From Zygnema circumcarinatum SAG 698-1b (taxonomy: Eukaryota; Plantae; Zygnematophyceae), in assembly GCA_037447605.1 (NCBI GenBank), contig CM074817.1, positions 806,001-870,000 of the forward strand: a DNA stretch of 64,000 bases. Reading direction: 5' to 3'. The first letter of the stretch is position 1; each line of letters starts with the position of its first letter. This document shows positions 25,563 to 44,787 of this stretch, one piece after another. A program made the position numbers and the translations under genes. The notes beneath the pieces are model-generated. The model was not told where the DNA came from. It saw nothing but the letters and a program-made list of their open reading frames with translations, and did no database searches.

Positions 25563-28500
25563 ATGTACCTCCTGTGGGCTCTGGCGGGAGCGCTGCTCCT
25601 TGCGGGAGTGGCGGCCCAAAATTCAAACGGTAAAATTAAAAAATATTACATTTGATGGGCCTTCTGGAAATCGGTGAATGCTTTAATTTTTGAACTGTGT
25701 TCGGAAAAAAAATTATGAATTTATATTAAATCAGAAATTGCAAGTGGGGCATTGGCATGTCGGTCAGGGCACAATTGGCTAATTCCTGCAAATGAAAATA
25801 TAAAAAAGCGAAACATCACGATTGGAAAAAAATTGTTTCTGTTTCTTTTTGCCCCCCCCCCTTTTTTTTTTTTTTAAGACTTTTGTTTTCCTTCATGTGC
25901 TGGAATTTTTTAGCGTTTTCCGTCCATTTTTACGGATTTGGAGTGTGCATGGAACTAGGGAGGGTTCTTGCGGCTTTCCGTGAAATGCTGCACTCCGCAA
26001 CGGCGAGAGAGAGAGAGGAGGGCGTGAGGAGTGAGAGAGAGAAAAACGGAGAGAGAAAGAGAGATAGAAAGAGGGAGGGCAAGAGAGGAGGGAGAGAGAG
26101 AACGAGAGAGAGAGAGAGGGAGGGCGACAGAGAAGGGACAGAGAGAAAGGGAGAGAGAACGGAAGATAGAGAGAGGGAGGGCGAGAGAGGAGGGAGAGGG
26201 AGAGAGAAAGAGTGATAGAAAGAGAGATATCGAGAGAGAGAGAGAGGGAGGGAGAGAGTGGAGGGAAAGTGTGGGGAGTGGAGGAGATCGAGGGGATGGG
26301 AGATGAACTGACTTAAGGTGGAAGAGAGAGTGTGAGGAAGGAGGGAAGGGAAGAGGGCAGGAGAGGAAGTGGAAAGAGGAAGGGGAGAGAGAGAGAGAGA
26401 GAGGGAGGGGTGGGGAAAGGAGGCAAGGGTGGAGATACGAACCGGAGAGAGATGGCAGAAGAGGGAGAGAGAGAGAAGAAGGAGAGAGAGAGAAGAAGGC
26501 GATAGAGGAGGGAAGGAGCGGAGGATGGGAGAGATCGAGAGAATGGGAGCGTTAGAGGGTTGGGAGGGGGGGAGGGCGGGGCATGTGGGAGAGAGAAAGA
26601 GGGAGGGGGAAAATGGCATACATTGCTTCAATCTGTCATAATTCATCAAGGAAATAAATGAAAAACTATATGTAACAAAATTAAAGAGTCTGAACTGGGA
26701 AGGGGAGAGGGTTCAGACTCCATTCTGATCAACTGCGGAGGTCCGGGATTCGTCGACGTATTTGGACGCACATGGCTTCCAGATGCATCCTCCCTCTACG
26801 CCTCGGGGGGCAGTTCTGTAAATTTAACTGCGGATTCCCTCTCAGCCTCCACTTTCAGAATTCTCGAAACTGCGCACGTGTGGCCGTTAAATTTTAGCCA
26901 AAATTATTTCTATTCTGTCCCCGTGGCGGCTGCGGGGTTGTATTGGGTGAGTATGGAAGGCTGAAGAATTGGGAGGATGGGGTGGAAGGAAGGAGCGAAG
27001 GGTGGAGGAGGGAGAGAGGAGGGTGGGAGAGAAAGGAGGGAGAGAGGGGGGAGGGAGAAAGGAGAACAGAGAGAGGGGGGTGGGAGATGGAGGAGGAAGA
27101 GAGGGGGAAGGAAGGGAGGAAGGAGGGAGAGGGGGGGAAGGGAGGAAGGAGGGAGCGAGGGGGGTGGGAAAGGGAGGAGGGAGAGGGTGGGGAGGGAGGG
27201 AGGAAGGAGGGAGAGAAGGGGGTGAGAGAAGGATAAGGGAGAGTGGGGGGAGGGAGGGAGGGAGGGAGGAGGGAAAGAGGGGGGTGGGAGAGGGAGGAGG
27301 GAGAAAGAGGGGAGGGAGGGAGGAAGGAGGAGGGAGAGAGAGGGGAGGGAGGGAGGAAGGAGGAGGGAGAGAGTGGGGAGGAGGAAGGGGGGAGGGAGGA
27401 AGGAGGAGAGAGAGTGAGTGGAGGGAAAAAGAAGAGAGTGGGGAGGAGAATGGGTGCATGGGAAAAGTGCGATGGGGAATGGTGGAAAAGAGAGAGGAGT
27501 GGTTGAGTGAAGGAGTGCACGAGTGGGTGAGGAGATGAGTGCGAGAGAGAGTGATGGGAAGGTGAGGGAGTGTGGGAGTGAAGTGTTGGCAGGAGGTGAG
27601 GGGTGTAGGAGGAGAGTTGGATGGGAAGTTGACGGAGGGAAAGGAGAAGGAAAGGGGATAGTCGGCCGGGAAGGGAGAGGGTGAGAAAGGGAGAGAAAGT
27701 GCTTGGGGTGGGAGGGAGGAAGGAGGAGAGGGTTGACGAGAGAGAAATGGAGAGAGAGAGAAAGGAGAAATGGAAGATGGAGAGCGGGGCCGAGGAAGGG
27801 AGGTGAAAGAGAGGGAGTGTGCGAGAGAGAGGCTGAGTTTAAAGCGAGGGCGGGTCTGAAGAGGGAGAAAGGAAGGGCGGGAGGACAGGGTTGAGGGAGA
27901 GAGGGAGAGGGACTGAGAGAGAATGAAGGGAGAGGGAGAGGCAGGTGGAGCGAGTGTGGGGACACACTGTAAAGTGAAGCACATGAACGACTGTACTGTA
28001 CTTATTCTATGTTTTTTTATTCTTTAAATTCTCCCAAAGTGTGGCACTGCAGGTACGGCTCTACTTCTCCACCTCCGCCTATGTGGGCCTGACAGATGGC
28101 GCATTCGCAGTGAATGTCAATGGAAACTACGTATGCGCCTATCTACATCCTTCTCTCTCTCTCCCTCTGCCTCTCCCCCCTCCTGCTTCCTCTCTCTCCC
28201 TCTGTCTCTCCCCCTTCCTGCTTCCTCTCCCTCCCTCTGTCTCCCCCACCTCCTGCTTCCTCTCTCTCCCTCTGTCTCCCCCCCCCTCCTGCTTCCTCTC
28301 TCTCCCTCTGTCTCTTCCCCCTCCTGCTTCCTCTCTCTCCCTCTGTCTCCCCCCCTTCCTGCTTTCTCTCTCCCTCTGTCTGTCCCCCTTCCTGCTTCCT
28401 CTCCCTCCCTCTGTCTCCCCCACCTCCTGCTTCCTCTCTCTCCCTCTGTCTCTCCCCCCTCCTGCTTCCTCTCTCGCCCTCTGTCTCTCCCCTCTCCTGC

Positions 28501-43500: not shown

Positions 43501-44787
43501 ATATCTTATTCTACTTCTTTCTCTCAGCAAGCCTTCCATTCAAAAAGGCATAGCCTCCTTAATCAGAAATATAGAAAAAATAGGCTTGCTTTGTTGTGTG
43601 GTTTTTTCTTGTGTGAGTGATATTACTGACTGACCTTTTGGTGCTGAGAGCAGGCCAAGGTAGCTGATTTCGGCCTTTTAAAGCCCCTCCAAGTCGACGA
43701 AAGAAAAGATGAAACGGTGAAGGTGGTGGGCACAAGGGGCTATCTCGACCCTGAGTACTACACAACTTTCGCAGTCACTCCCAAATCTGACGTTTATAGG
43801 TGAGCTGCTCTATGGGACCCTTACTCATTTGAATGTAGCACTGTTGTTTTGGTAGCCTCTAAAGACATATATAGAGGGTTTAGGCTGAGGCAGAGATCTC
43901 TATGTGGGTTGTTATTTATTTGGGAGAGAGAGTTCTGCAGTTTTGGAGTCGTCCTTTTGGAGCTTGTGACCGGGAAGCCGGCCATTCTGGAGTCAACCGA
44001 AGAGGGGGACAACAGGATCATCACGATCATTTCTTGGGTAAGAAAAGGCTTCACATAGCTTCTCCTCATGGATGATGGCTTGCATCCAACAAACATAGCC
44101 ATCTTGTACCCCCATTCAAGATAAAAAAAGGGGATAGAAATTAACATTTACAAGAAGAAAGAAGAAGAGAAGAAGAGAAGAGAGAGAAGAAGAAAGAAAG
44201 AAGAACGAAAGAAGAACGAAAGAAGAAAGAAGAAGAAAGAAGAAAGAGAAGAAAAGAAGAAGAAGAGAGAAGAGAGAGAAAGAAGAGAAAAGAAAGAAGA
44301 AGAAGAAAAAGAAGAGAGAGTTCATGCCTCGCCTAATCTCCCGCTCTCCATGGCTGTGCAGGTGAAAATGAGGGCGAACAATGCCCGTTGGGAGGAAATT
44401 CCGGACCCCCAAATGGCGCATGAAAAGACCCAACAAGAGTTTATGAAGGTGATCGATGGTATAGTAAACCTCGCCTTCAGCTGCGTGCAGCAGTTCGGGC
44501 AGGACCGGCCCGCCATGAACGAGGTCCAGCTCCAATTGGAGGAGATATGCGCCGGCGATGTCGCCATAGACATTCACAACATAGCCTCTCCGGCGATCGG
44601 CGGCAGCGGAGATGGGAGCAGTGGGAGAGGAGGGAGCGGGAGAGGAGGGAGGGGTGGGAGAGAGAGAGAGAGGGAGTGGGGGCACTCTCACTCGATGGGA
44701 GATAGCTCCATAGTGTTTGGGGAGACGAGATCATCGGTGACGTCATCCGATGGTCACTATCCGATGAGTGATGTCAGCGCGCGGTAA
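25563..44787 (+). CDS. RLK-B: giant receptor-like kinase with five tandem-malectin modules (ten malectin domains), TM and RD kinase, ~2221 aa, 33 exons
   Basis: Signal exon 25563-25629. M1: 26717-26946, 28053-28130, 29352-29480, 29647-30039, 30541-30751. M2: 31374-31612, 31741-31812, 32182-32313, 32766-33182, 33358-33568. M3: 33708-33940, 34124-34201, 34390-34521, 35070-35477, 35686-35893. M4: 36041-36267, 36543-36635, 36972-37103, 37529-37927, 38143-38350. M5: 38501-38736, 39737-39814, 40109-40240, 40482-40874, 41499-41694. TM: 41902-42060. Kinase: 42359-42573, 43081-43219, 43333-43484, 43654-43799, 43941-44037, 44362-44787. The exons sum to 6666 nt in one frame with no internal stop. Kinase motifs [22 protein letters not shown] and [10 protein letters not shown]. 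Confidence 0.88.
28150..29095. repeat. Intronic ~34-35-bp tandem minisatellite (about 25 copies)
   Basis: Unit CTCCTGCTTCCTCTCTCTCCCTCTGTCTCTCCCCC in RLK-B intron 3. It gives overlapping stop-free ORFs of 215-367 aa on both strands. Confidence 0.9.

Follow-up and report, generated by a model that had tools for sequence, protein, structure and literature searches.

A predicted receptor kinase gene with five malectin-like modules

We found that a 64,000-nucleotide stretch of the genome of the zygnematophyte Zygnema circumcarinatum SAG 698-1b (GenBank assembly GCA_037447605.1, contig CM074817.1, positions 806,001 to 870,000 of the forward strand; hereafter the window) holds a giant gene at 25563-44787 on the forward strand, which probably encodes a type-I receptor kinase of the RLK/Pelle family with five malectin-like modules in its ectodomain. 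We put the probability that this is a single intact gene with a five-module architecture at about 0.7. The gene model was built by enumerating the frame-compatible GT...AG pairs between neighbouring coding stretches, which were then assembled and refined. It has 33 exons and 32 introns of 113-1,221 nucleotides (nt), all of the GT-AG type and 31 with a CAG acceptor, and its coding sequence of 6,690 nt yields a protein of 2,229 amino acids (aa) with no internal stop. No run of N was found inside the gene. An earlier reading made from the letters of this stretch without database searches (the sequence-only reading) had proposed one continuous spliced frame of ~2221 aa between a start ATG at 25563 and a stop at 44785-44787, encoding a signal peptide, five two-lobed malectin-like units, one transmembrane (TM) helix and an RD kinase. 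The splice model reproduced both coordinates exactly, and the open frame and all of these parts were recovered in it, as follows:

25563-25629, + strand: exon 1, start codon and signal peptide (hydropathy peak at aa 1-19), ending in phase 1
26717-26946, 28053-28130, 29352-29480, 29647-30039, 30541-30751, + strand: module 1, aa 23-369 (splice model, Pfam)
31374-31612, 31741-31833, 32182-32313, 32766-33182, 33358-33568, + strand: module 2, aa 370-733 (splice model, Pfam)
33708-33940, 34124-34201, 34390-34521, 35070-35477, 35686-35893, + strand: module 3, aa 734-1086 (splice model, Pfam)
36041-36267, 36543-36635, 36972-37103, 37529-37927, 38143-38350, + strand: module 4, aa 1087-1439 (splice model, Pfam)
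38501-38736, 39737-39814, 40109-40240, 40482-40874, 41499-41694, + strand: module 5, adjacent to the membrane, aa 1440-1784 (splice model, Pfam)
41899-42060, + strand: exon 27, short Ser/Ala/Gly-rich stalk, TM helix and basic stop-transfer stretch (HQKRKNRE)
42359-42573, 43081-43219, 43333-43484, 43654-43799, 43941-44037, 44362-44787, + strand: six kinase exons (Pfam, motifs)

The five exons of a module measure 227-239, 78 or 93, 129-132, 393-417 and 196-211 nt, with phases 1, 0, 0, 0 and 0. Every module both starts and ends in phase 1, which is also the phase in which the signal-peptide exon ends and the TM exon starts. Three acceptors are slightly uncertain (26716/26686, 40108/40072/40096 and 41898/41901), and the choice among them shifts the protein length by a few residues. 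For module 5, the acceptor at 40096 (GAG) was dropped in favour of that at 40108 (CAG), which gives a 132-nt exon like those of the other modules and a length that fits the relative from Mesotaenium described below.

The introns of the giant gene consist mostly of strand-asymmetric, GA-rich or CT-rich low-complexity DNA, whose GC skew per 2 kb reaches +0.75 and -0.57. The GA-/CT-rich stretches lie at 26000-29150, 30050-30530, 32320-32760, 37140-37240, 37300-37520, 38790-39700, 41010-41490 and 42580-43030. Because of this composition, long spurious open reading frames occur in several frames (for example 28041-29144, 367 aa), and such introns could mislead gene finders.

Domains of the predicted protein

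The five modules are 346-363 aa long and pairwise 27-36% identical, and therefore the duplication is neither recent nor made by the assembly. Despite this divergence, the large second-lobe exon retains 15 columns that are invariant across all five modules, and the first exon, which belongs to the first lobe, retains 10. The repeat motifs that the sequence-only reading had quoted, including R.HFAE...GDR..DIY.N.Q, were found in all five modules; the first-lobe motif reads INCGG in four of them and INCGS in module 3. The same reading had expected ten malectin matches (PF11721/PF12819). When single exons were compared with Pfam, Malectin or Malectin_like was matched by 10 of the 10 lobe exons tested (E 0.11 to 5e-11), so that the number held, while the first-lobe exons of modules 1 and 2 stayed under the curated cut-off when taken singly. 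The second-lobe exons matched Malectin at E 2e-8 to 1e-3 and Malectin_like at 5e-11 and 6e-5, and the first-lobe exons matched Malectin at E 2e-6 to 0.11.

The modules are joined by short linkers of ~10-15 aa that are rich in Pro, Ala and Ser, and together they form an ectodomain of ~1,760 aa, which is separated from the TM helix by ~15 residues after module 5. No leucine-rich repeat (LRR) and no GDPC motif was found between module 5 and the TM helix. The helix is the sole strong hydropathy peak of the protein (Kyte-Doolittle 2.93 at ~aa 1800). All 41 N-x-S/T sequons lie N-terminal to it and none lies in the cytoplasmic part of 388 aa. The kinase exons match Pkinase and PK_Tyr_Ser-Thr in Pfam, and the kinase domain carries GTGGFG, VAIK, HRD, DFG, DPEY and DRP, that is, all catalytic motifs of an RD kinase; it is followed by a Gly/Ser/Arg-rich tail. 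Membership in the RLK/Pelle family is thus indicated by the signal peptide, the ectodomain, the single TM helix, the catalytic motifs and the nearest solved kinases, which are plant RLKs and IRAK.

Five-module relatives in Mesotaenium

A profile of the five second-lobe exons was scored against 1.84 billion representative proteins, which yielded 1,793 matches with E no higher than 1e-3. The top match by far was ME000129S00311 (P0001) of Mesotaenium endlicherianum, with E 3.8e-97 and eight matched stretches. A second protein of this alga, ME000354S06104 (P0166; 1,684 aa), is 86% identical to the first and colinear with aa 109-1724 of the giant protein, with 34.6% identity over 1,670 aa. Pfam finds five Malectin_like and nine Malectin stretches in it, and it passes through modules 4 and 5 uninterrupted. 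ME000129S00311 contributes a signal peptide directly before INCGG, together with modules 1-4. The two Mesotaenium models are thus like the giant gene in their five colinear malectin-like units and in the signal peptide followed by INCGG; they differ in being uncharacterised gene models with neither TM helix nor kinase, and no publication on them was found. Whole modules align end to end with algal relatives at E 1e-26 to 1e-28. No protein in the searched collections was more than ~46% identical to any part of the giant protein, and in the ESM Atlas the clusters nearest to the Mesotaenium protein were all single-unit.

In the module trees, all modules of the window and of Mesotaenium form one clade (support 99/98), apart from the ectodomains of Spirogloea and of land plants. 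The one-module paralog in the window (see below) and the one-module proteins of Mesotaenium belong to this same clade. Module 5 pairs with module 5 of Mesotaenium at 97/97, and at 85/90 once the paralog is added; it scores 212 bits against that module and 109-178 bits against the other Mesotaenium units tested. The colinearity of the Mesotaenium models indicates that the layout is common to two zygnematophyte lineages and therefore not an assembly artefact. An assembly misjoin as the source of the five modules is ruled out by the divergence of the predicted modules and by this colinearity. Both lineages carry five predicted units, and the membrane-proximal unit is common to both. Its presence in Mesotaenium makes the five-unit layout old, and selection has presumably kept it.

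A one-module tandem paralog and the probable origin of the giant gene

A search of the window with the giant protein identified a tandem paralog, which lies 5.5 kb upstream of the giant gene:

12673-20062, + strand: one-module malectin-like receptor kinase, 13 exons, 799 aa

The paralog consists of a signal peptide, one module, a TM helix and a kinase, and Pfam supports its malectin-like exons. Its introns all agree in position and phase with those of the giant gene, if a single module is taken together with the TM and kinase region, and junctions such as IYW|VRLYF, NNQ|LAYEG and SDVY|SFGV are common to both. The exon counts agree with this, since the paralog has 1+5+1+6 = 13 exons and the giant gene 1+25+1+6 = 33. 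The giant module most like the paralog module is module 5, at 37% identity. The kinases of the two genes group at 97/87 in a first kinase tree and at only 92/40 in a second (both trees are described below). A one-module protein of 789 aa in Mesotaenium, ME000076S09680, shares with the window paralog and the giant gene a kinase clade (100/99) and the module clade; both of these proteins have one module, as opposed to five.

From the identical intron positions we infer that the giant gene goes back to an ancestor with 13 exons and one module, in which a phase 1-1 cassette of five exons was multiplied in tandem. The reading frame would have been preserved because the cassette starts and ends in phase 1. 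Such a phase 1-1 modular layout recalls exon shuffling in the extracellular proteins of animals. We know of no other plant receptor kinase in which whole lectin-type ectodomain units are repeated.

Relationship to CrRLK1L and MLD-LRR receptor kinases

The sequence-only reading had called the modules CrRLK1L-type. When the second-lobe profile was compared with the PDB, only the FER, ANX1 and ANX2 ectodomains were found, each on its second malectin-like domain (E 1.3e-17 to 4.7e-13). The first-lobe profile gave marginal matches only (FER, E 0.03). A whole module aligns end to end with the ectodomain of an At1g30570-like CrRLK1L of Vigna at E 4e-13. The kinase was less distinctive. Among solved structures, kinase exon 3 scored 52 bits with FER, 48.7 with SYMRK, 44.8 with BAK1, 44.4 with Pto and 37.8 with IRAK4, kinase exon 1 matched Pto, LYK3 and FER, and the last kinase exon had no match in the PDB, so that no clear best emerged among FER, SYMRK, BAK1 and Pto. 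The kinase of the Mesotaenium protein P0171, which was used as a proxy, scored SYMRK above BAK1 and BAK1 above FER.

A kinase phylogeny, as the sequence-only reading had proposed, did not place the giant kinase within the land-plant CrRLK1L clade. The first tree was discarded for classification, as its references labelled 'BSK3', 'PBL', 'LRR-I' and 'BAK1-like' were multi-kinase predictions whose best kinase was CrRLK1L-like. The second tree used single-kinase references of the HERK1, HERK2 and At5g24010 types, together with kinases of the MLD-LRR type (malectin-like domain followed by LRRs) from Chara and zygnematophytes. In this tree, P0171, the giant kinase and the paralog kinase form a long branch (100/99) outside a 99/89 group that contains the land-plant CrRLK1Ls, the Chara and zygnematophyte MLD-LRR kinases and IOS1; this placement is to be read with the long branch, the few references and the single reliable outgroup in mind, three intended outgroups having been multi-kinase predictions. 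In the module trees, the MLD-LRR ectodomains branch between the giant clade and the land-plant CrRLK1Ls.

The land-plant CrRLK1Ls (FERONIA, ANXUR1/2, THESEUS1 and HERK1/2) and the giant protein are alike in joining a two-lobed malectin-like ectodomain directly to a TM helix, followed by an RLK/Pelle kinase of the RD type. They differ in that the former have a single unit, 800-900 aa and few introns, whereas the giant protein has five units, 2,229 aa and 33 exons, and neither its kinase nor its ectodomain nests in the land-plant clade. MLD-LRR kinases (LRR-I, SYMRK type, including SYMRK, IOS1 and their zygnematophyte pro-orthologues) have LRRs and usually GDPC before the TM helix, and the giant protein has neither. 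Because the kinase and module trees both put its clade outside the land-plant CrRLK1Ls, the giant gene is, as far as these comparisons go, CrRLK1L-like in layout and not a CrRLK1L in the strict sense. The label CrRLK1L-type thus stands for the layout (the unit adjoins the TM helix, with neither LRR nor GDPC between them) and for the best solved relatives, FER and ANX, and does not stand for descent as seen in the trees.

This placement agrees with the literature, in which strict-sense CrRLK1Ls, like the RALF peptides that serve as their ligands, are held to originate in land plants (10.1101/2020.12.23.424085; PMC7618880), and CpRLK1 of Closterium was placed between CrRLK1L and MLD-LRR kinases (PMC5002434). 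Among the malectin-like receptor kinases of zygnematophytes, CpRLK1 alone has been studied functionally, and it acts in wall-linked gamete release (Hirano et al. 2015). Compared by its description only, it resembles the giant protein in being a receptor kinase of this type from a zygnematophyte and in an intermediate placement roughly like that of the giant clade.

A further group of proteins was noted during these comparisons. P0037, P0096, P0307, P0309 and P0314 (from Spirogloea, Mesotaenium and Logan transcript contigs) combine a malectin-like domain, LRRs and a kinase, and Pfam finds LRRNT_2 and LRR_8 in Spirogloea P0037 and Logan P0096. Their layout is SYMRK-like, and their kinases are similar to those of CrRLK1Ls, being 50-58% identical to land-plant kinases of the HERK1/HERK2 type, with which they group in the tree.

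Other receptor kinases with more than one malectin-like unit

In a full-text search of the literature, no account of a receptor kinase carrying two or more malectin-like units was found, in line with the sequence-only reading, which knew of no described receptor with such an architecture. Malectin is not mentioned in the Zygnema genome paper and its supplements or in the text of the Mesotaenium transcriptome paper. A search for multi-malectin receptor kinases among proteins, which the sequence-only reading had suggested, returned two kinds of result, namely the Mesotaenium models with five units and no kinase, and Prunus predictions with two units and a kinase. Homologous, unnamed five-unit gene models therefore already exist in Mesotaenium. 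Among the Prunus proteins, XP_020414352, annotated as 'receptor-like protein kinase FERONIA', has units at aa 33-432 and 446-842 and a kinase at aa 921-1211. The statement that land-plant CrRLK1Ls carry exactly one unit is thus not absolute among predicted proteins. The cluster of XP_020414352 is like the giant gene in combining a single kinase with at least two complete malectin-like units; it differs in that the units are two, the proteins are true land-plant CrRLK1Ls, and they are predictions of which no description was found in the literature. Such two-unit 'FERONIA' predictions (P0102 and P0151-P0155; ~1,205-1,263 aa, one kinase) occur in P. persica, P. dulcis, P. armeniaca and P. speciosa. 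Other long 'FERONIA' or THESEUS entries were rejected as multi-unit receptors, being fusions of two receptors or proteins with two kinases.

Alternative readings of the locus

Several observations weigh against the reading of the locus as one gene for a five-module receptor kinase. The exon joins are splice-model predictions, and the giant protein is absent from the searched protein collections, hence the model has no independent annotation. Seven sequencing runs retrieved in a search for RNA contain the first exon of module 1 (share 0.67-1.00), and four of the seven (X2, X5, X17 and X19) also contain the large module-5 exon (share 1.00), which speaks for the one-gene reading; against it, X2 is the sole run with an RNA label, the library type of the other six being unknown, and finding an exon in a run is not evidence that it is spliced. 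Both Mesotaenium models are cut off at their ends and contain neither a TM helix nor a kinase, and therefore the link between five modules and a kinase is seen in this window only. Position-wise orthology to Mesotaenium is clear for module 5 only; modules 1 and 2 show it weakly, and modules 3 and 4 do not show it. In addition, RALF orthologues were reported to be absent from algae (10.1101/2020.12.23.424085).

The locus might instead comprise two or more genes, in which modules 1-4, or some of them, would belong to one or more multi-malectin proteins that are secreted or bound to the wall, and module 5, the TM helix and the kinase would make up an ordinary one-module receptor kinase after them. 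The kinase-free Mesotaenium models and the one-module receptor kinase that adjoins the giant gene would fit such a division. It is very unlikely in view of the module boundaries. None of the internal modules opens with a start codon and signal peptide of its own, and each begins in phase 1. At their ends the modules lack a stop codon and run in phase 1 into a consensus donor site, and the introns at the boundaries measure only 139-622 nt. ME000354S06104, moreover, is continuous across modules 4 and 5. The phases themselves raise another reading, in which the modules form a cassette-exon system, in-frame splicing yields receptors with one to five modules, and the full form is perhaps a minor isoform. 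The phase 1-1 modules with inner exons in phase 0-0, flanked by signal-peptide and TM exons in phase 1, would permit this. Such symmetry is, however, a simple by-product of tandem cassette duplication, the strong consensus sites at all module-boundary introns favour constitutive use, and the Mesotaenium gene models join consecutive modules, which together make this reading unlikely.

It is also conceivable that some modules are decaying leftovers of duplication, carried as dead weight or skipped, and that only the membrane-proximal module is functional, as module 5 is both the only one with clear Mesotaenium orthology and the closest to the one-module paralog (37%). We consider this very improbable, since in 25 of the 25 module exons the frame is open, the splice sites are canonical and the invariant residues of the family are present; that these residues persist at 27-36% identity points to long-term purifying selection, and five modules are also retained in Mesotaenium. 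A single intact gene for a five-module receptor kinase is thus the reading that we prefer.

A possible role in wall sensing

If the five-module receptor kinase is made as predicted, its ectodomain could bind a wall polymer, a wall fragment or a wall-associated protein outside the cell, and this binding would cause an oligomeric or conformational change of the receptor. The changed state would then activate the cytoplasmic kinase, as in other malectin-like receptor kinases. With its five diverged units, the receptor could bind a repetitive polymer, for example pectin, multivalently (by avidity), or it could couple several ligand specificities to a single kinase. By analogy with other members of this group, the receptor may sense the wall or a glycan specifically, a possibility to which we give somewhat less than even odds. 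[quoted passage not shown] If true, this would be a mode of wall sensing that has no counterpart among the described plant receptor kinases.

In land plants, malectin-like receptor kinases are central sensors of wall integrity and reproduction. How they originated is a matter of debate, and CrRLK1Ls and RALFs are confined to land plants in current reviews. The locus suggests that zygnematophytes possess a malectin-like unit placed directly on a TM helix and a kinase, with no LRRs, and that one lineage multiplied this sensor unit five-fold by phase-compatible cassette duplication, with the result retained in two distant genera. If made as predicted, the protein would offer a natural test of multivalent wall-polymer binding by malectin-like units, and its five diverged units a set for ligand screening.

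Other features of the window

Exons of an MRG-family chromatin gene were found at ~5977-7329 on the reverse strand. One piece matches the MRG domain (E 3.5e-6), and a second piece matches an MSL3-type chromo-like domain at E 1.6e-3, which is under the curated cut-off. Two short arrays, at 10466-10661 (a 106-bp unit repeated 1.8 times) and 60963-61019 (a 23-bp unit repeated 2.5 times), share a CCATTGGCAATGG-like palindromic motif and may represent a dispersed repeat.

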